DNA of 64,000 nucleotides from Cycas panzhihuaensis (GCA_023213395.1 CM041465.1:156123741-156187740); one strand, 5' to 3'; shown: positions 33,012-44,542, numbered from the stretch's first letter. The notes: generated by a model from the letters alone, not told the origin. Numbers and translations are program-made.

Positions 33012-33332
33012 TGTAATGAACCGTTACACCAAAACCCCGAGGTGTTAGTGAAGAGGGCCCCCCACCAAGTAGACCATTACCTCCCCCCCGGTTCAAATGG
33101 GCTAGCCCCGCCTAGCCCCGCTTTCACCGGCGTTCATGCGCCCCACAGGCCCCGGCTACGACGGCATTTTGCGCATCGGCGACGATTGGCGCGTCACCCC
33201 ACCGCCCCCATAAGCGGTGTTGCCCCCACGGGATTTGAACCCGGGTCTTGGCTCTGATAGCACTTGTAATGAACCGTTACACCAAAACCCCGAGGTGTTA
33301 GTGAAGAGGGCCCCCCACCAAGTAGACCATTA
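33012..33332 (-). mobile_element. TRIM (terminal-repeat retrotransposon in miniature), about 321 bp
   Basis: Identical 68-bp repeats at 33012-33079 and 33265-33332; PBS-like GCTCTGATAGCA at 33251-33262; PPT-like CCTCCCCCCC at 33080-33089; GC-rich non-coding interior. Confidence 0.85.
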
Positions 33333-35771
33333 TCCTTACCGGATTTTACTCAACCATTCACATTGGAATGTGATGCTTCGGGTTTTGGAATAGGAGCAAT
33401 TACATTACGTGAGGAAGGCCAATAGCTTAAGAAAGCCGGAAGCTGAATAATAGGGAAAAAACAAAACCAATATATGACAAGGAGATGCTGGCCATTATGC
33501 ATGCAATACACCAATGGAGGCAGTATTTACTAAGGAGTAAATTTGTGGTTAGAACTGATCATGACAGCCTGAAGTACTTTCTGAATCAAAAGGTATTATC
33601 TGATGAGCAACAAAAATGGGTCAGTAAGTTGCAGACTTTTGACTTCACCATAGAATACAAAAAAGGGAAAGAAAATGTAATAGCCGATGCTCTATCTAGA
33701 CTACCGGAGGAAGGAAAGATTGAAGCCTCAGCCAATTCAATGACAATAGCAACTCCAAAATGGGCAATAGAGCTGGCAAAGGAATATGAAGACGACAAGA
33801 TATCACAAGGAATAAGGCAAAAGATCAGAGAAGGAAAAGCAGGGCAATTTACGGAACAAGGAGAATTAATTCTAAGGAAAGGAAAAGTATTTGTTCCAAA
33901 GACAAGTAAACTAAAAGAAGCACTGATTCCAGAAGCTCACTCAACTTCGGTTTCGTGGACATTCGTGGATGGATAAGACTTATAGAAGGCTTCAAGCTCA
34001 TTTCTTGGAAAGGGTTGAAATCGACGTCCTCCAATTTGTATCGAATGTGATACATGTCAAAGGAATAAAACCGAACTGTGAAGACCCCCGGGTTGCTACA
34101 ATCCTTCCCATTCCCCATCAAAATGGGAAGGAATCTCTATGGATTTTATTACGTGTCTTCTGCGTTCGTAAGGAAGAGACGCAATTTTGTAGTGGTAGAC
34201 AGTTAACTAAATACGCCCATTTCGGGGAACTCACACAGAGCAAAAGCAAGCCAAATAGCGTAATTATATATGAAAGAAATTCACAGACTACATGGCTTTC
34301 CAAAGGTTATAATCGTGACGGGGATCCCAAATTCACAAGTCACTTTTGGAAGGAGCTGCTCAAATCGATCGGCACTAGCTTACATATGAGCACAAGATAC
34401 CACCCGCATGATGGCCGACGGAAATAGTTAACAAATGTGTGGAGGGATACTTAAGAAACTTCGCATCAGATAAACAGACACAATGGCATCGATGGCTCCA
34501 TTTGGCAGAATGGTGGTATAACACCACATACCATGCAACAGCTAAAATGTCACCATTTCAAGCACTATATGGGTATGAACCTCCATCACTCTTGAATTGG
34601 CTAAATACATCTAAAGTGTAGACAGTCCAAGAAAACTTGCAACAGATGCAAGAAACAATTCGAATATTAAAGAATAATTTGGAGATGGCAAAAAATAGGA
34701 TGAAGCAACAAGCAAATAGAAAGAGATCTGAACGGAGTTTTGAGATAGGAGAATGCGTATTCTTAAGACTCCAACCCTATAAACAGATGTCGATGAAACA
34801 AAATAATCGACATAAATTATCACCAAGATTCTTTGGACCATATCAGATTGAGGAACGCATAGGGAAAGTGGCATATCAGTTAAAACTGCCACCAGAAAGC
34901 AAAATCCATAATATCTTCCATGTATCTTGCTTGAAGAAAAAGTTGGGTGAAAAGGAAGCTCCACAAACAAATTTACCAACACTTGATGAAGAAGGAATGA
35001 TCGTAGTGGAACCTGAGGGGATATTGAAGACCAGGGACAAGAATTTACGATCTAGGATAATAAAAGAGTATCTCATCAAATGAAAGACATTGGAGCTTGA
35101 AGATGCAACGTGGGAATCTAAAGAATGGATGCAGAAAAATGGGCCCTTACCAATGCTTTGAGGGCAAAGCATGTTTTGAAGGGGAGGGATTTGTAACATT
35201 CCAAAATCTAGTTAAAACTATGCCATGTAACCATTCAAATTGAAGGCCTCTGAACAAGGATTCCAACGGTTCAGACGAAAGTCAAATCCGACATCTCAAT
35301 CAAAAGTTATGGCCATTTCAAGTTAGCCTGCCAGTTTTTGGAGAAGTTCTGGCCGACTTCTATTTGAGCAGTTTTAAGAAGAATATTACCCACCGCCGAC
35401 TTCTATTACTTTCGTTTGGCTGCCTATTTAAGGAGGATTTGCGGCCTCATTTCAACATCGTCGGAGGTTCTTTTGTCGCACATTTTCGGTTCTAGGGCTG
35501 CAATTAGCTCGCCCATTTGGGGGCTGCAGTTTGGAGGGTTCCTCGCCTCGAAGAGGGAAGCTCACGTCTTCAGGAAAGACAGGTACTTTGTTGAACTTTT
35601 GCTTTATTTTGGTATCATTTGACAATAAAGACTATTATTTATCTCCGTGGATTCTGTAATTCCTGTTCATTGTTCATTTTTCTTATTGAATAGCATCTAG
35701 TTATTGTTTTTGTGGATTATTACTTGTATTTTTGAGGAAACTTGCTATAAAAGTAAAACTAGATCGCTACA
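33333..35771 (+). mobile_element. Gypsy D: 5'-truncated chromovirus (RNase H, integrase, chromodomain, PPT, 3' LTR 35192-35771)
   Basis: LPDFTQPFTLECDASG; VRTDHDSLKY; AEWWYNT; LSPRFFGPY; EYLIK*..EDATWE chromodomain; PPT GAAGGGGAGGGA; LTR TGTAAC...GCTACA. Confidence 0.92.
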
Positions 35772-35906
35772 CCCCATCGAGTTCCAAATACCCAGTTTGA
35801 GGATTGCCTTAGCTTGTCATTGGACGACACTCAATCTACACCCCATCGAGTTCCAAATACCCAGTTTGAGGATTGCCTTAGCTTGTCATTGGACGACACT
35901 CAATCT
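35767..35906 (+). repeat. Perfect 69-bp tandem duplication spanning the D LTR end and C integrase
   Basis: CTACACCCCATCGAG...CACTCAAT repeated at 35767 and 35836. Confidence 0.95.
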
Positions 35907-36091
35907 TTACGAGAACACCTATGGCAATTGATTCAACTTAACGAGGATAGACAAAAATCAGAATGGGTATAGGAGATCAAGAAAACAAGATAGAAGGCAT
36001 GGCACAACCGCCACCTCAAATGCCCTCAACTCGAGCAAGGAGAACAAGTCCTACTGTACGATAGCAAATTCTGCACTCGTCTCAAAAAATT

Positions 36092-36522
36092 TGTTAGATT
36101 ATATAATATAAGCTTATGTTTCTTAATGTTATTATTTAAGTCACATGTCTTAAAAATTATTTAAATGATTGTAAAGTTGTAAACTTATATTAAATATTAA
36201 TTGATTTGTGGATGGTCATTGAAATGTGGAACCGCATTCCAACGAACCTCCGTCCTATTTATTAATCTCCTAGATTCATGGAATTGGTTCCAGGAATCTA
36301 GGAGGTCTGTCCATATGCCTGAAACAAGGCTATTTTAAGGGGTTATTTTTTGTATAGTGGTTTTCATTTATTTATTAATAACAACTTAGATTAGGAGGTG
36401 GTTTTTCTTCCCCAGAAGGGGTTTTCCACCTGTCAACCCTGTGTACATGTGCATTGTCTCTCTCTTGTGTTTCTCTTTTGTTCCTGTAATATTTTGACTG
36501 TGTACATGTGCCTATTCTATCA
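36092..36522 (+). repeat. 5' LTR of copia E
   Basis: Direct repeat of 43387-43817. Confidence 0.97.
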
Positions 36523-36527
36523 TGGTA

Positions 36528-37046
36528 TCAGAGCAAGGTTTTTAAAACTGTTTTCTTATCATCCTCCTCCATAAGGAAGCAGCCTGGAGGAATACTTTTG
36601 GCTTCCTCGTCCCTAATTCTTTGATCAGCTGCTTGTGCAAACTCAATTTTTCTTCTTATCAAGTATGCGGGAACTTTTCCAAAATTTTCTTTCTGCTTTT
36701 GAGGATCCGGTGATTTGAGCTTAGAATTGGAAATACATCGTGGTGCCATTGATGCATCCAAAGAATTCTTTGCGATGAAGTCAGTACTGTTGCCTTTAAA
36801 CCTGTCCCCAGATGGGTACTGATATTTTTTGCTCATGGAACGCCTAATAGGTGGTGGCAAAGAAGATTCTCTACGGCTTGAATCCTGTTTTCTAGCGTGG
36901 TTCTTTGCGCTTGTTTCTGCAATGGCCAATTTATTATGCTTGGCATGATTCCGAGGCATTATTCCTCTCCCTTGTATCACTTCCCTTATCACCTTTGGTG
37001 GATTGAGCACTTCATTAATTTGGGAACTGTCAATATGCATTGGCAA
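36528..37046 (-). CDS. ENKD1: Captured, C-terminally truncated Enkurin-domain protein (ENKD1-like ciliary/flagellar protein), antisense within copia E; frame stays open upstream to 37103
   Basis: NFGKVPAYLIRRK...EEAKSIPPGCFLMEEDDKKTVLKTLL matches the Enkurin-domain entry motif (G.VP.YL..R...PPG...M.E..R...L..L); upstream PRNHAKHN..AI and DFIAKN motifs resemble ENKD1; recognised from memory, not by search. Confidence 0.8.
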   Translation of the reverse strand: MPMHIDSSQINEVLNPPKVIREVIQGRGIMPRNHAKHNKLAIAETSAKNHARKQDSSRRESSLPPPIRRSMSKKYQYPSGDRFKGNSTDFIAKNSLDASMAPRCISNSKLKSPDPQKQKENFGKVPAYLIRRKIEFAQAADQRIRDEEAKSIPPGCFLMEEDDKKTVLKTLL

Positions 37047-37889
37047 CTTGATAATGCCCCCGGTTTTTAGTTTAGGAATTCCACAATATTCTTCTTCACC
37101 AACTTATACACGCTCTCATCTGGGCTTTTCAAGGACAACCTCTTCATTCCAGAGACGGGTACATACTTCCGATACTGCAAAGCCATATTTATTAAAGAGT
37201 TTGCAGTTCCATAGTCGTCAAGTTAATTATTTTTCAGAGAAACCTGTCTGTCTCAGCAAGCTCATCTTGTGTTGGAGCCTTAGTTTAATCTCATCTATAA
37301 GAACCTCTTCAAGAGTCCAACAGGCCTTCAAAGGAAAACTCCATAGGTGTTTGAACCTCACATTGATGACGGTCTAGCGGCCCGTTACCCTCTGGTCAAC
37401 ATGCTGTGCAAAATCAGATGGATACTCTTCACCCTTAACAGGTATAAGAGATATTCCACTGACACAACAAATAGATCCAACCCTAATTCGCTTCTACAAG
37501 GTGAAATCTGAGTCGGCTGGAGGTTGGTTGCAATCCAGTGGTGATTTTGTGGAATTGCCAGCGGGCATGTAAGACCTGAGGTTGCTTCTCCAACTTCATC
37601 TTGTCCGAACAAGAGACCTGCCTGGGAGAGTTTGCTCTAACGGCCAAGATCGACTTGGTATATGCTCGCTACTTCTTCAAGGCCATTGCCGCCAAGAATT
37701 GACCTGCAGAAATAGTGGACGCCACGCCTTTGCTCTTCGGATCTTAGATGCCATTGTAGAACCTACGTCGCTCCAACGCCATTGACGAACTTGCGTTCAT
37801 CCACGAAGCTCCGTCGACCTGCATCACGCCATCGCCGTCGCCATCGCCAATGCGATAAATAGGTAGGGTTTCTACCCTTTACCCCCCTG

Positions 37890-38950
37890 GATCCCACTTT
37901 CAATTAAAACTTAATTTTGTGTTTCAAAATAAATCAAACCCGTCAGTCCACGCCCTTGTTTTTTTGTTTTATTTGTTTTGTTTTTTTTTTTTTTTTATTT
38001 AAATCAAAGCCCCCCCTATTATACTTTGATTTAAATCAACCCCCTTTTTTATAATACCTTTATTAAAACAAATTTATATACCACCCCCCCCCCCCCCCAA
38101 TAACACCCCCTCTTTTATTATTTTGATTATTTAATCAAATCGAATAACCTCCCTTACATTTTACTCTTAACCTTTTTTCAATGTTAAAATTAATCCTTCT
38201 CCTCTACAATACTTTAATGATAAAACATTAGCCCCCTCCCTTTTTTTTTTTGATGAAACATAAGCTCAACCCCCCTCTCTTTTTCCTTATTATGTTTCTT
38301 TTTTGATTAAATTTTGTATTGTATACTTAATTTAAATCAAATACAATCCCTCTTTTTCTATTATGCCTTGATTCTAAAATAAATCTATACCCTTCTATTA
38401 CTCTTTAATGATTAAAATTAACCCTTTTATCACTACATTTTAATGTTAAAAATTATTTCAAATTAACATAGTTAATTTTAAGAAAATTAAAATTAACCTT
38501 TTACTTATATTTAATCAAATACATTTTTTTTATTATATTCATTATTATTTCTCTCCAACACTTTATTATTAATTTCTGAATTAACTTTTTCTTTCCTTTC
38601 ACACTTAATCTATAGAGTTGAATTATGCCATTTAATCCTTAAAATTATATATCTATTTCTTAAAATAAAAAGAGAAATTAAATACCTTAGTTACAAAGTT
38701 GTTTTACTTTGTTAAGAGGAATTGTTTATTTTTTAAGAGGGATTTTTTATTTTGAAAGAGGACAGTCTATTTTCAAAAAGGGGATTGTTTATTAAACAAG
38801 GACTTTTTTATTCAAAGTAAAGGAGGACTATTTTTTCTAAGGGAGACTATTTCTCTAAAGGGGACTATTTCTCTAAAGGGGACTATTTTTCTAAAGAGAA
38901 CTGTTTTTCAAAAATGATTGCTTAAGGAACTGTTTTTAAGAAGTTGTTTG
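37890..38950 (+). repeat. Low-complexity degenerate tandem repeats in the long 5' UTR of copia E
   Basis: C-run/T-run units (AAATCAA-CCCCC-TTTT) at 37890-38450, then roughly 20-bp GGGACTATTT(T)CTAAAG units at 38710-38940. Confidence 0.75.
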
Positions 38951-39112
38951 TTTATTTTTGTTTAAAAACACATGATCTTAAAATCAATTAATGCATACTA
39001 AGATGTCTTTGTGAATTAGATCTGTTAACAAGATTAGTACTTTCACTAGGTAATTATTTTTTTAGTCACTTTCATAACTTTTCAATCTACAAACAAACCT
39101 CAACACTCCGAT

Positions 39113-42100
39113 ATGGCATTAATGCCAGGGACAGTCACTTGCGTTCCAATTCCAGTATTAACCGGCTCAAACTATGCCGACTGGAGGAATCGCATATCCC
39201 ATCAGCTCAAACAGCAAAAAGTATGGCGATATGTGACAGGTGAATTCCAAAAACCAAAAGCAGATGCTACTGAGAGTCTTATGGTATATCTGATGAACTC
39301 AGATACCACATTAGGCACCATATTAAACTCACTCTCACCAAATCACCGGTTTCGAAAAGATGACTTAGCCACTGTCTGGAAAACCTTGGAAGAAAAATAT
39401 GACAAGGTTGATACACATCAAGTAGCTATCCTAGAAGAACAATTGTATAATCTGACTTTTGACGATTTCTCAAATGTTGGGGATTTTTTAACTAAAATCC
39501 AATCAATTAATAAAGATCTAGATAACTGCATTAAATCCAAAACCAAAGAAGGTGATATAGAAAAAATAACTACGCATGTCAAAGACGACGACACGCTCAT
39601 ATGTCTTGCAGTCAACAAATTACCAAAACACTTTAATCTTTACCAAGCTGCCAGACAACAAGCTGGCAATCCACCTATCACATTCAATCAGCTGACAAAC
39701 CAGCTGATTGAACATCATACAATGTTAATTAGAATAGGTGCAATAAAAGATCATTCACAGGCTTTGTTTTCTAAAACTAAGCCACAATTTAAAAACAAAC
39801 AACAGAATAACAATTTTCAAAAATTCCAGATACCTCATCGAGGTTCACCATCTAATTCTCAAAATAATGCTAAATATTCTGGTCCAACTAAAAACCAGAA
39901 TACTTCTAATCAATTCGTTTCTAATAGAAACAATGCATCTTCTTCTCAGAACACTAGTTGTGCCCATCTTGTCATAAAAGAGGCCATACTATTGATGTCT
40001 CAGAGAAGTAGAATAGCTTCTAAGCATGGAAAGCTTCCAAGGGATTGCAAAATAAACCGCAATCCCATTCTCAATCCCATTTTCAATCACATTCACAATC
40101 ACGATCACAAAACCATCAATTTCATAATCGTTCTTTTGCAGCAACAACTTCTGCATTTGTTGCTCCTACCAACCAACCACCACAATGGATCCTTGACTGT
40201 AGTGCGTCCCATCGTATGACTGGACACCAGAAAAACTTAACCGCTTATCAATCCGAAACGAACTCTGAAGAAGAGATTTCTTTCGGTAGTGGTAATCAAC
40301 TCAAAGTCAAAGGATCTGGTGATGTTATCCTAAAGGATGGTTCAATCAAGGACGTTTTTTACGTACCTAGTTTGTTACCAAACCTCCTCTCAGTTTATCA
40401 AATCTGCCAGAAAGACCTTGTCGTCGAATTCTGGAAAAAAAAATTTGTCATTAAGGATCCATTACACAAATTCAAACGTATTGCTTCAGGACCTATTGAT
40501 CATAACACAGGTTTCTATAGTCTGACCAGTTTTTAAAATAATAAATCAAAATTTTTTAGTGCCTTCATACAACTCGACTCGACAAAGAACTTTGACATGC
40601 AAGATTTGGCCATACTAGTTATGGCAAGCTGCAATATTTAATTAAGCATGAAATGGTCCATGGTTTACCACCCTTAAACACTGTTTATGGTGTTTGTGAA
40701 GCCTGTGTGAGAGGCAAACAACACATGGATCCATTTCCACACAAAACTCAATATCAAGCAACTGCTCCACTCGAACTTGTCCACTCTGATATATGTGGGC
40801 CTTTTCATGTACTATCATACTCAGGATCTCGTTATTTCGTTACATTCATAGATGATTATTCAAGAAAATGTTGGGTTTATATGCTCAAAACACGCAGTCA
40901 AGTGTTTGACATTTTCGTTGAATATAAAATGTTAGCAGAAAGTCAATCTAATTCAAGAATCAAAATATTCCGATATGATAATGCTAAGGAATATTTAAGT
41001 AGAAATTTTACCTCTTTCTGCAAATCACATGGAATTAAATTCCAACATTCAGTTGCATACACGCCTCAACAAAACGGTGTTGCTGAATGCAAAAACCGTA
41101 CTCTTGTTGAAATGACTCATTGCATGTTACATGCAAAGAATCTCGATTTAAAATTATGGGCAGAAGCAATTAACTGCTCTGATTATTTATTAAATCGTTT
41201 ACCCAGTCAATGTCTACAAAACGTCACTCCAGAACAAAAATGGTCTGGAAGAAAACCATCTGTCCAACATTTACGAATCTTTGGCAGTATCGCGTGGGGA
41301 CATATCCCTCACGAAAAACGTAAAAAGTTAGATAAAAAAAGTCAAAAATACATCTTCGTTGGCTACAGTGAAGAGAGCAAGGCCTATAGACTTTTAGATC
41401 TAGTCATGCATAACATTTCTATTTTGCGTGATGTAGTATTTGATGAAGAAGGATCTACTTCAACATCTACTTATGTAGAACTTCCTGTTGAAGATTTGTT
41501 AACCAACACTTGTTTGGTTGACCCTTTTGATAAACAAGTTGATTCAAAAATTATAGATTCTTTATCAACTCAAGTCCAAAATTGGACTCTATCAGAACCC
41601 ACTGAAACAGATCCTTCTCTTCAAGCTAGTACTCAAATCAACCTACAACCTCAGATACAGTTACTGACAAGTAACCTGTTTGGGCAACCAAAATGCCTGC
41701 TGATGTTGGATCTGATGTAGGCATTCCTACTGATACTAGGCGTACACGTGCACAAAAACTACATGCAAATTTTGCCTTAATGGCAAAAATAATGGAAAAC
41801 AATGATCCCAAAACTTTTAAACAAGCCAAAGAACAATCCTCAGATGGCAAGATGCTATGCGATCAATTTGTCGCTTTAATTAAAAATTCCACCGGGATCT
41901 TGTTCCTCTCCCACCGGAAAAATGTAGTCAATCAGAATGGGTTTATAGGACTAAATATAATTCAACAGCGCAGGTAAAAATATAAAGCTCGCCTTTGTTG
42001 CCAAAGGATTTTCCCAAATAGATGGCATTGACTATAATGAAACCTTTGCCCTCGCCGCAAAGATGAATACAATCAAGACAATTATTGCTCTTGCAGCCAA

Positions 42101-43342
42101 GTTTGGTTGGGAAATCCACCAAATGGATGTTAAGAGTGCTTTCTTGAATGGTGATCTCAAAGAAGAGATCTACATGTCACGACCACCGGATTCATTGAAA
42201 ATCCTAATTTAGTCTGCAAACTTAAAAAATCTATTTATGGTTTAAAACAAGCTCCTCGAGCTTGGTATACCAAAGTTGATGATTACTTAATCCACATTGG
42301 ATACACTAGATGTATTAGTGATCTAAATCTTAATTTTAAACGTGAAAATGAAAATCTTACCATTCTAATCCTCTATGTTGATGACATTATTATCACTGGA
42401 TCATCAACCCATAATATTCATCATCTCAAATCAACTTTAATGAACAAATTTGAAATGACCGATTTAGGTCTATTACATTACTTTCTAGGTTTACAAGTTT
42501 ATCAAAATCAATCAAATATAACACTATCTCAACCTAAGTATATTCTTGATTTAATTCAGCGGTTTAACATGGAAAATGCTAAACCTGTATCCAATCCTTT
42601 ACAATCAGGAGTTAAATTGTCTACTGATTGTTCAACTCCATTATATGATCCAACTCTATATAGACAACTCATTGGTAGTCTAATCTATCTTACTCATACC
42701 CGACCTGACATTTCTTATGCTGTTGCCTTATGCTCCCGATATATACAACAACCACACAAATCTCACTGGAAAGCAGCTAAACAAATCTTACGCTATCTAA
42801 AGAATATTGTGTTTTATGGTTTAACTTATAACTTTGGTAATAAACCACTAACATTAACTGGATATACTGATTCCGATTGGGCAGGTGATTCAAATGATTG
42901 TAAATCTACTTCAGGTTATGTATTTTTTATTGATTCCTCACCTATTACTTGGTCTAGCAAAAAAATGCAGGCACTAGCGTTATCAACAACTGAAGCCGAA
43001 TATCGAGCATTAGTCGAAGCTGGTAAAGAAGCACTTTGGCTAAAATCACTACTAAATGAAATTGGTCTGACTCTAAACTCTTCAATTGAAATTAAAGTTG
43101 ATAATCAAGGTGCAATTGCTATTGCTACTAATCCTGTTTCTCATTCTAGAACTAAACATATTGAATTACATCAACATTTTATTCGCAATTTAGTTACTGA
43201 TAATCTTGTTTGTTTGTCTTATTGTCCAACAGATTTACAGATTGCTGACATTCTTACGAAGTCATTACCTGAACCAAAGTTTTTAAATCTCAGAGATTTA
43301 TTGCAGATAAAAGAAGTCTCCATCAAAGGGGGATCACCGTGA
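39113..43342 (+). pseudogene. Copia E gag-pol with a few frameshifts and stops
   Basis: LTGSNYADW gag; WILDCSASHRMT protease; LELVHSDICGP and PQQNGVAE integrase; QMDVKSAFLNG, LYVDD RT; GYTDSDWAG and RTKHIE RNase H. Confidence 0.95.
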
Positions 43343-43386
43343 TGAAGCTCTTTTTTCTCCCAGACAAAGTTTACATTAAAGGGGGA

Positions 43387-43817
43387 TGTTAGATTATATA
43401 ATGTAAACTTATGTTTCTTAATGTTATTATTTAAGTCACATGTCTTAAAAATTATTTAAATGATTGTAAAGTTGTAAACTTATGTTAAATATTAATTGAT
43501 TTGTGGATGGTCGTTGAAATGCGGAACCGCATTCCAACGAACCTCCGTCCTATTTATTAATCTCCTAGGTTCATGGAATTGGTTCCAGGAATCTAGGAGG
43601 TCTGTCCATATGCCTGAAACAAGGCTATTTTAGGGGGTTGTTTTTTGTATAGTGGTTTTCATTTATTTATTAATAAAAACTTAGATTATGAGGTGGTTTT
43701 TCTTCCCCAGAAGGGGTTTTCCACCTATCAACCCTGTGTACATGTGCATTGTCTCTCTCTTGTGTTTCTCTTCAGTTCCTGTAATACTTTGACTATGTAC
43801 ATGTGCCTGTTCTATCA
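43387..43817 (+). repeat. 3' LTR of copia E
   Basis: Direct repeat of 36092-36522. Confidence 0.97.
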
Positions 43818-44542
43818 AAATTGAAACCATGACGGTTGGGACCCTACTAAGTGGAAAAGATTTATCCTAACAGATCAGTTCAACTGCAAGAAGTGAATGG
43901 TTATAAACTGCCTACCCTAGTCAACGACAATAGGTTGAAAAAATATCACCATTAAAGCATACCCCTCCAGTACAAGTCAATTGGAAGTATAATACATGCT
44001 ACGTGAAGTTGCAGACAACTAAAGTTGTCCTAGTACCGATACAAAGACTCAACACCAGTGCATAAACATAAAAACTTCTTACAAAGTAACTAAAAAACAG
44101 AAAAAAAACTCATCATAACTCGCAAAAATTATACACCTAGATAAAGGTCAAAGAGAATTACACCTTGCATCCCAAATTTGGAATGTAAACAAGCAAAAAA
44201 ATCCAGCAGAATATGATACATTCCTCATAGGGGATGGAAGAGACAAAAATTGGCCAGAAATTGGAACCTTTCCAAAAATGGAATGGACTGAACTGCATGC
44301 ATTCCCAGATAGGAATGCGACCCAAACAGATGAAAAAAAAAGTGTATTATAAGTACCAGAACCCTATAATCATTCTGACATTTGAACGCATGAAGGAAAG
44401 GAGAGTAATACAACCCTAAAGAGGAACGACCACTTCAATTGTCCAAACCAGGGAACGCACGTCCAACAAAAAGGTGCAAGTCCCTCAAAAGGATCCATTG
44501 TTGAATCCTGTTTTTTTTCATACATTCCCCTCTGGCCATAGG

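Follow-up and report, generated by a model that had tools for sequence, protein, structure and literature searches.

Capture of host gene sequence by LTR retrotransposons is common. The available text of a maize survey counts 425 elements derived from at least 189 captures and reports that no element combined fragments from two or more genes (Baucom et al. 2009, PMC2774510). Chimeras with several parents, produced by template switching that is guided by microsimilarity, have been described in animals, yeast and plants (Tan et al. 2016, PMC5131818). The model put forward for this LTR-mediated retroposition places the switch in minus-strand synthesis and at arbitrary internal sites, and its cargo lies in sense orientation (PMC5131818). 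In the parts of the sources that cover it, the maize element Bs1 is LTR-bounded and contains exonic pieces of three cellular genes; its copies share switch points and were re-mobilised, its own genes are mostly lost, and its cargo is an expressed hybrid ORF in the sense direction (PMC5131818, PMC13317346). Sequences transduced by retrotransposons are usually found in the element's own sense (reviewed in PMC7264820), and the word antisense is absent from a 2026 review of plant gene capture (PMC13317346). Antisense additional ORFs inside LTR retrotransposons are known; they occur throughout their families, mostly in the interval from pol to the 3′ LTR, and lack homologues among cellular genes (Vicient and Casacuberta 2020, PMC7264820). 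A paper search for literature joining enkurin with a retrotransposon found none.

The locus described here lies in a 64,000-nt stretch of Cycas panzhihuaensis DNA, the whole of which is called the window. It deviates from the usual sense rule, the Enkurin-derived piece of its cargo running on the minus strand, opposite to the plus-strand gag-pol. Our preferred interpretation, which we consider rather probable, is that a copia element acquired a host-transcript mosaic of ~ 1.3 kb behind its PBS through a strand-transfer error of reverse transcriptase. The chimera would then have transposed as a unit, because the TSD flanks the whole element.

Architecture of the element and composition of its cargo

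The element is 7.7 kb long (36092-43817), TSD-flanked and of the Ty1/copia class (Table 1). Its domain order of gag, integrase and RT/RNase H is that of copia elements, with Pfam matches to PF14223 at 39113-40219, to PF00665 and PF25597 at 40653-41720 and to PF07727 at 42155-43339. The paired TG..CA LTRs with their 5-bp TSD, and the tRNA-iMet PBS together with the polypurine tract, agree with the same class. The preliminary description had reported an intact-bordered copia with a matching TSD and LTRs ~ 96% identical, and this was confirmed: AAATT stands on both sides, and the 431-bp LTRs were found by blastn to be 96.3% identical with zero indels. The gag-pol frame, which would be intact in an autonomous element, was interrupted by five frame changes between 39113 and 43339. 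The closest relatives of the copia RT were at most 58% identical, and many of them were from Pinus taeda, a gymnosperm. No second copy of the LTR or of the cargo was detected by blastn within the 64,000-nt window, and an Rfam scan of 36000-39200 returned no RNA family.

Table 1. Features of the copia element and of its cargo, in positions of the window.
Feature	Position	Strand	Basis
Left TSD, AAATT	36087..36091		Direct reading; same letters at 43818-43822
5′ LTR, 431 bp, TG...CA	36092..36522	+	blastn and pairwise alignment vs 43387-43817
PBS core TGGTATCAGAGC, tRNA-iMet type, 12 nt	36523-36534	+	Direct reading and tRNA consensus
172-codon ORF, stop codon supplied by the PBS	36528..37046	−	ORF map, Pfam, phmmer
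Fragment 1, probable antisense copy of Enkurin-gene transcript	36533..37306	−	X1/X2/X8/X19 contigs, phmmer, alignment
Fragment 2, part of another cellular sequence, unrelated to the first	37304..37556		Separate contigs, 4/4 runs, loose ends on both sides
Fragment 3, ~ 50 nt of a third cellular sequence	37556..37606		Loose ends before 37553-37558 and behind 37606
Fragment 4, short piece, run X2 only	37659..37712		In X2, loose ends before 37659 and after 37712
Last GC-rich part of the cargo	37758..37875		X2 joint 37343 to 37758; X2 depth up to bin 37809-37875
AT-rich repetitive leader	37900..39112	+	Base composition, tandem repeats
gag-pol (gag, integrase, RT, RNase H), degenerate	39113..43339	+	Pfam, open-frame map, RT relatives
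Polypurine tract AAAGGGGGA, just before the 3′ LTR	43378..43386	+	Direct reading
3′ LTR, 431 bp, TG...CA	43387..43817	+	blastn and alignment vs 5′ LTR
Right TSD, AAATT	43818..43822		Direct reading

The leader has a GC content of 16-37% and contains a C15 run (38084-38098), a T-rich run (37959-38000) and two tandem arrays, one with an 18-bp unit repeated five times (38818-38913) and one with a 21-bp unit repeated 2.8 times (38703-38762). A motif of the form TAAATCAA...CCCC recurs in it and resembles the sequence that follows the PBS in a related element assembled from run X1. Two further repeats were noted outside the element. A perfect 69-bp tandem duplication is situated at 35767-35904, ~ 190 bp upstream of the copia 5′ LTR, and identical 68-bp direct repeats, 253 bp apart, are found at 33012-33079 and 33265-33332, where they resemble the miniature LTR pair of a TRIM.

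The stretch between the PBS and the leader was compared with coded public runs, whose nature as RNA or DNA is a guess. About one-third of the sampled words of 36531-37860 were contained in 20 runs from 10 organisms, and the contigs of four runs (X1, X2, X8 and X19, from four other organisms) were compared with 36000-38000. In all four runs, contigs followed the window colinearly from 36533 with an identity of ~ 98% (11-14 differences per 565-645 nt), and the colinear stretch ended at 37097-37308, according to the run. Past 36533, the contigs of 4/4 runs read on as coding sequence without turning into PBS or LTR. They are therefore taken to represent the cellular gene, with the capture breakpoint at 36533/36534. 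In our own reading, the contig letters past 36533 would encode the next conserved residues of the Enkurin family.

Sequencing depth was 16-59 for the gene contigs in three runs and 5 in X19, the LTR contigs had single-digit depth, and the contigs of each run totalled 37-64 Mb. This depth contrast, together with the small totals, indicates that the runs are most likely transcriptomes. The cargo at 36533-37306 is thus colinear over 774 nt with what are probably mRNA contigs, the kind of run being guessed, and an intron-like continuation that the X2 contig shows just beyond 37306 is missing from the cargo. A spliced-mRNA origin of the cargo, unproven as it is, is suggested by these two observations. 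If the runs were DNA, the colinearity would mean that the parent has no introns here and would hold no information on an mRNA.

The X1 and X2 contigs diverge from each other at 37304-37308, exactly where the Enkurin piece ends, and the X2 contig continues there with a pyrimidine run and CAG/G, which is similar to a 3′ splice site and marks a putative exon boundary. Taken together, the divergence point and the splice-site-like sequence make it probable that the 5′ UTR of the parent gene is interrupted by an intron at precisely the point of the capture break. Several runs also contained paired 118-nt contigs (36617-36734 and 37148-37265) with 2-6 differences between the members of a pair. These are assembly bubbles in the transcript of the cellular Enkurin gene and indicate that the parent is present as two alleles or paralogues.

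Fragment 1 begins with ~ 160 nt of 5′ UTR, followed by an ATG at 37147 and coding sequence that runs up to the middle of the Enkurin domain. Beyond it the cargo is a mosaic, in which at least three more unrelated cellular pieces follow the Enkurin piece up to ~ 37875; the preliminary description had missed this mosaic, as well as the microhomology between the PBS joint and the tRNA copy that is set out below. Fragment 2 lacks 19-25 nt at 37399-37408 that its cellular copy has. For fragment 3, both loose ends were seen in X1, X2 and X19, and the near end only in X8. The GC content drops from 0.57 to 0.23 at 37900. Neighbouring pieces overlap by 3-5 nt at 37304-37308 and by 0-4 nt at 37553-37558. 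A low-depth contig across the joint of fragments 1 and 2 (37287-37343) was found in both X1 and X2 (depths 2.4 and 23.9), so the chimeric joint is present in other organisms. The X2 bridging contig jumps from 37343 to 37758, from which it follows that a shorter cargo variant, minus 414 nt, exists elsewhere. Pfam searches with ten open stretches of fragments 2-4 gave no match. With the cellular letter at 37344, one plus-strand frame of fragment 2 loses a stop, which is a weak hint that this fragment may be in sense orientation. A pure insertion without loss of leader sequence was also considered, on the basis of the 30 nt that follow the PBS in the X1 element, and was dropped when 9 of 200 shuffles scored equally high.

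The joint at the PBS and the route of capture

On the plus strand, the sequence at 36523-36540 is complementary to the 3′ end of plant tRNA-Met in 17 of its 18 nt, the reference being the plant tRNA-Met consensus quoted in PMC7198128 rather than this genome's own tRNA-iMet. A tRNA scan of the window found no tRNA gene. The last eight of the 18 nt (36533-36540) are common to the cellular Enkurin transcript and constitute the capture joint, where 7/8 letters match the tRNA copy. Within 36533-37306 no site other than the joint agrees with the tRNA-derived 8-mer GCCAGGTT at seven or more of eight positions, 0.29 such sites being expected. The related X1 element has an LTR 89% identical to the present one and the same 12-nt PBS, and its sequence is different from 36535 on.

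The sole mismatch of the 18-mer is at position 13 (36535), where the host letter A is found and the tRNA would have templated a C. The strong-stop end may consequently have been only 12 nt long, and the overlap would then be 2 nt. This A falls opposite tRNA nucleotide 64, which in plant and yeast initiator tRNA reportedly carries a 2′-O-ribosyl-phosphate. Misincorporation during read-through of such a modified nucleotide would give the same A as the host letter, and the A at this one locus may be host-derived or misincorporated. A paper search for literature on strong-stop synthesis with a ribosyl group at position 64 found none.

Among the replication intermediates, a terminal copy of the tRNA is found only at the 3′ end of plus-strand strong-stop DNA. 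One interpretation of the joint is that this DNA, ending in the copy of the tRNA-iMet 3′ end, missed its normal second jump and annealed through the 8-nt microhomology to a co-packaged Enkurin mRNA instead of the minus-strand PBS. Extension by reverse transcriptase toward the 5′ end of the mRNA would have placed an antisense cDNA exactly behind the PBS. Further jumps at microhomologies would have added the other pieces, before synthesis returned to the leader of the element. Short matches were found at three joints of the cargo, as is characteristic of switch points in LTR-mediated retroposition, and the host-derived sequence lies inside an LTR-bounded, TSD-flanked unit. We judge it fairly likely that the joints were made by reverse transcriptase; that the plus-strand strong-stop step in particular was responsible is proposed tentatively, at somewhat less than an even chance. 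The evidence on mechanism comes from one locus. The plus-strand model predicts that all pieces are antisense, and the hint of a sense fragment 2 counts against it. The A at position 13 of the 18-mer also counts against the model, and so does the exact coincidence of the end of fragment 1 with a putative exon boundary, a coincidence that the model would not lead one to expect. A LINE-type retrocopy was rejected, as neither a poly(A) tail nor an inner TSD was visible in the sequence read.

Some of the same data can be read in terms of a capture at the DNA level, which we regard as unlikely. A break just behind the PBS, in an integrated or extrachromosomal copy, would have been followed by end joining or replication-based template switching; several pieces of cDNA or genomic DNA would have been inserted as patches in this repair, and retrotransposition of the chimera would have come later. 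A mosaic of short pieces with overlaps of 0-5 nt is also typical of end-joining filler DNA, the orientations may be mixed if fragment 2 is sense, and a 12-nt strong-stop end would reduce the overlap at the PBS to the 2 nt already mentioned. A random break is, however, unlikely to fall inside an 18-nt tRNA copy with a 7/8 match, the chance figure for a random joint being 3.8e-4. It also speaks against such a break that the related X1 element diverges at the same position, 36534/36535, and that fragment 1 does not continue into the intron-like sequence of X2.

A further alternative is a classical, sense-type capture, in which minus-strand switching or read-through transduction would have acted on RNA transcribed in antisense from the Enkurin locus. 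LTR-mediated retroposition is explained by this model in the literature (PMC5131818), yet we consider it quite improbable here. Such a capture gives a cargo in the element's own orientation, as transduced sequences usually are (PMC7264820), and so an antisense host RNA colinear with the mature mRNA would be required; why the joint sits where the tRNA copy ends would be left unexplained.

Identity and decay of the antisense reading frame

The 172-codon minus-strand ORF that had been reported between the PBS and gag was present, with the terminal residues given for it. Its frame is actually open from 37094, and its TGA stop (36530-36528) sits inside the PBS TGGTATCAGAGC. An Enkurin-domain, ENKD1-like origin had been proposed for it and was borne out by homology searches. 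A phmmer search of the ORF against 1.8 billion representatives gave 155 matches (best 1.6e-33, 45% identity), a full PF13864 domain of 43-83 bits was present in 10/10 of the top phmmer matches tested, and a profile search returned 48 proteins, nearly all with an Enkurin domain. The named relatives are Enkurin domain-containing proteins of the moss Ceratodon and the fern Ceratopteris, both 43% identical, and there are green-algal relatives too, such as one from Chloropicon that is annotated as Enkurin domain-containing. The comparison with Pfam, proposed as a check of this origin, gave a divided answer: PF13864 is indeed the direct match, at 21.5 bits, but this is below the gathering cutoff of 23.6 and concerns half a domain, the ORF covering profile positions 1-44 of 92 and ending mid-domain. 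A word-based protein search with the ORF alone gave no match, which reflects the limits of that method, because phmmer did detect relatives. All 15/15 invariant alignment columns are kept by the ORF. These comparisons argue, beyond chance, that the ORF is a true homologue of the Enkurin-domain (ENKD1-like) proteins of the green lineage.

In common with green-lineage ENKD1/PF13864 proteins, the ORF has the first half of the domain and the ES(I/V)YxL, HxDSSQ and G(I)xPRNH blocks. Its own alignment starts at the HxDSSQ block and ends midway through the Enkurin domain. Unlike those proteins it is frameshifted and stops ~ 55 residues short of the end, so that domain positions 45-92 are missing, and it is thus a fragment and no working member of the family. 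The ATG at 37147 had been suggested as possibly the true N terminus. This is supported, as the segment that it opens contains ESVYKLV, which fits the N-terminal ES(I/V)YxL motif of the homologues. The break between this segment and the long ORF had been ascribed to a single lost C near 37077. Its actual cause is a gap of 28 nt between 37095 and 37096, seen in comparison with the X1, X2 and X8 contigs that span the site. With the PBS cut in mid-domain and this gap, the cargo holds no complete, uninterrupted Enkurin coding sequence.

Nine coding differences between the cargo and the cellular sequence were listed, seven of them nonsynonymous and two synonymous. The cellular letters correspond to the family residues at conserved sites, for example in the G-I-T-P-R-N block, and since they match the family consensus the changes arose on the side of the cargo. 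When 10-14 random substitutions were simulated in a 172-codon ORF, the frame stayed open in 65-73% of trials. The break density of the cargo, at one per 0.62 kb, equals that of gag-pol, where five frame changes occur in 4.2 kb. The open frame beside a broken gag-pol had earlier been taken as a hint of selection; gag-pol is degenerate, as was said, but the simulation and the equal break density remove the hint. Selection holding the ORF open was accordingly rejected in view of the mid-domain cut, the 28-nt frameshift, the 7:2 changes and the high probability of an open frame. The 28-nt gap, the 7:2 count, the consensus states of the cellular letters and a probability of ~ 0.7 that the frame stays open by itself show that the cargo decays neutrally, with no sign of selection. 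The cargo differs from its parent by ~ 2.2% and the LTRs differ by 3.7%, that is ~ 1.9% per LTR; as the two values are similar, the capture took place not long before the insertion of the element.

The cargo is, then, very probably a captured and non-functional host fragment. With the runs read as RNA, fragment 1 would be an antisense copy of the 5′ two-thirds of an ENKD1-like flagellar mRNA, a by-product and no gene. It is very improbable that the cargo has instead a function, either as a truncated Enkurin-like protein or as a selected antisense or siRNA module by which the element, or its host, would tune a sperm-motility gene. Transcripts of the element would carry antisense sequence with ~ 98% identity to the host mRNA, and the contigs that bridge fragments 1 and 2 in two other organisms would amount to expression if the runs are RNA. 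The 7:2 changes fall on conserved residues, however, half of the domain is missing, the frame is shifted by the 28-nt gap and the ORF has no start context of its own. These objections concern the ORF, and an antisense function needs no ORF. That the ORF is a chance frame with a spurious resemblance to Enkurin, as the Pfam score below cutoff and the empty word-based search might suggest, is refuted by the phmmer and profile matches, by the ~ 98% identical cellular counterpart and by the 15 invariant columns.

Relation to known systems

The anatomy of the PBS joint would single out plus-strand transfer as a source of captured sequence, whereas published models involve minus-strand switching and sense cargo. 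We would go further only as a speculation, and a doubtful one: the copia lineage may repeatedly load antisense copies of host mRNAs behind its PBS, through strong-stop priming on mRNAs that mimic the tRNA 3′ end, and this would be a distinct and recurrent route. The family would then be a mobile library of antisense RNAs against host genes, the present one being a sperm-flagellum gene, and RNAi cross-talk between element and host would be possible. Every full-length transcript of the element should carry ~ 770 nt antisense to the host mRNA. If the arrangement is family-wide, it would define an element class with transcripts antisense to host genes, and strand-transfer errors of plant copia elements could be studied on the naturally occurring switch points of the family. 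Elements that carry antisense cargo would also bear on an epigenetic conflict, in which transposons are to be silenced while the genes that they have copied are to be spared.

The locus shares with the grass captures (Baucom et al. 2009, PMC2774510; Jiang and Ramachandran 2013 for sorghum and rice, via PMC7264820) an intact, TSD-flanked LTR element with host fragments; the text available for those captures does not address the position or orientation of the fragments relative to the PBS. With the antisense ORFs collected by Vicient and Casacuberta (PMC7264820) it has in common an antisense ORF inside an LTR retrotransposon, but here the ORF is in the 5′ leader and has a cellular parent ~ 98% identical to it.

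Like Bs1, as far as that element is covered in the sources, the present one is LTR-bounded and holds pieces of several cellular genes. It differs in that it keeps its gag-pol, degenerate as this is, and in that the one cargo piece identified lies directly against the PBS in antisense orientation and is in decay. With LTR-mediated retroposition, including the chimeric cDNAs of yeast Ty1 (PMC5131818), the locus shares host pieces inside an LTR element, joints at short matches and several parents, and there are possible signs of secondary retroposition. In contrast to that model, the first joint here falls within the part of the PBS that was copied from the tRNA, and the piece behind it is in antisense orientation; this points to plus-strand transfer. 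The cargo in itself is ordinary and non-functional, and the interesting part is the mosaic together with the joint at the tRNA copy. The locus belongs to a known kind of capture, and differs from the described cases by the orientation of its cargo, by the position of the cargo at the PBS and by the step of reverse transcription that these imply.
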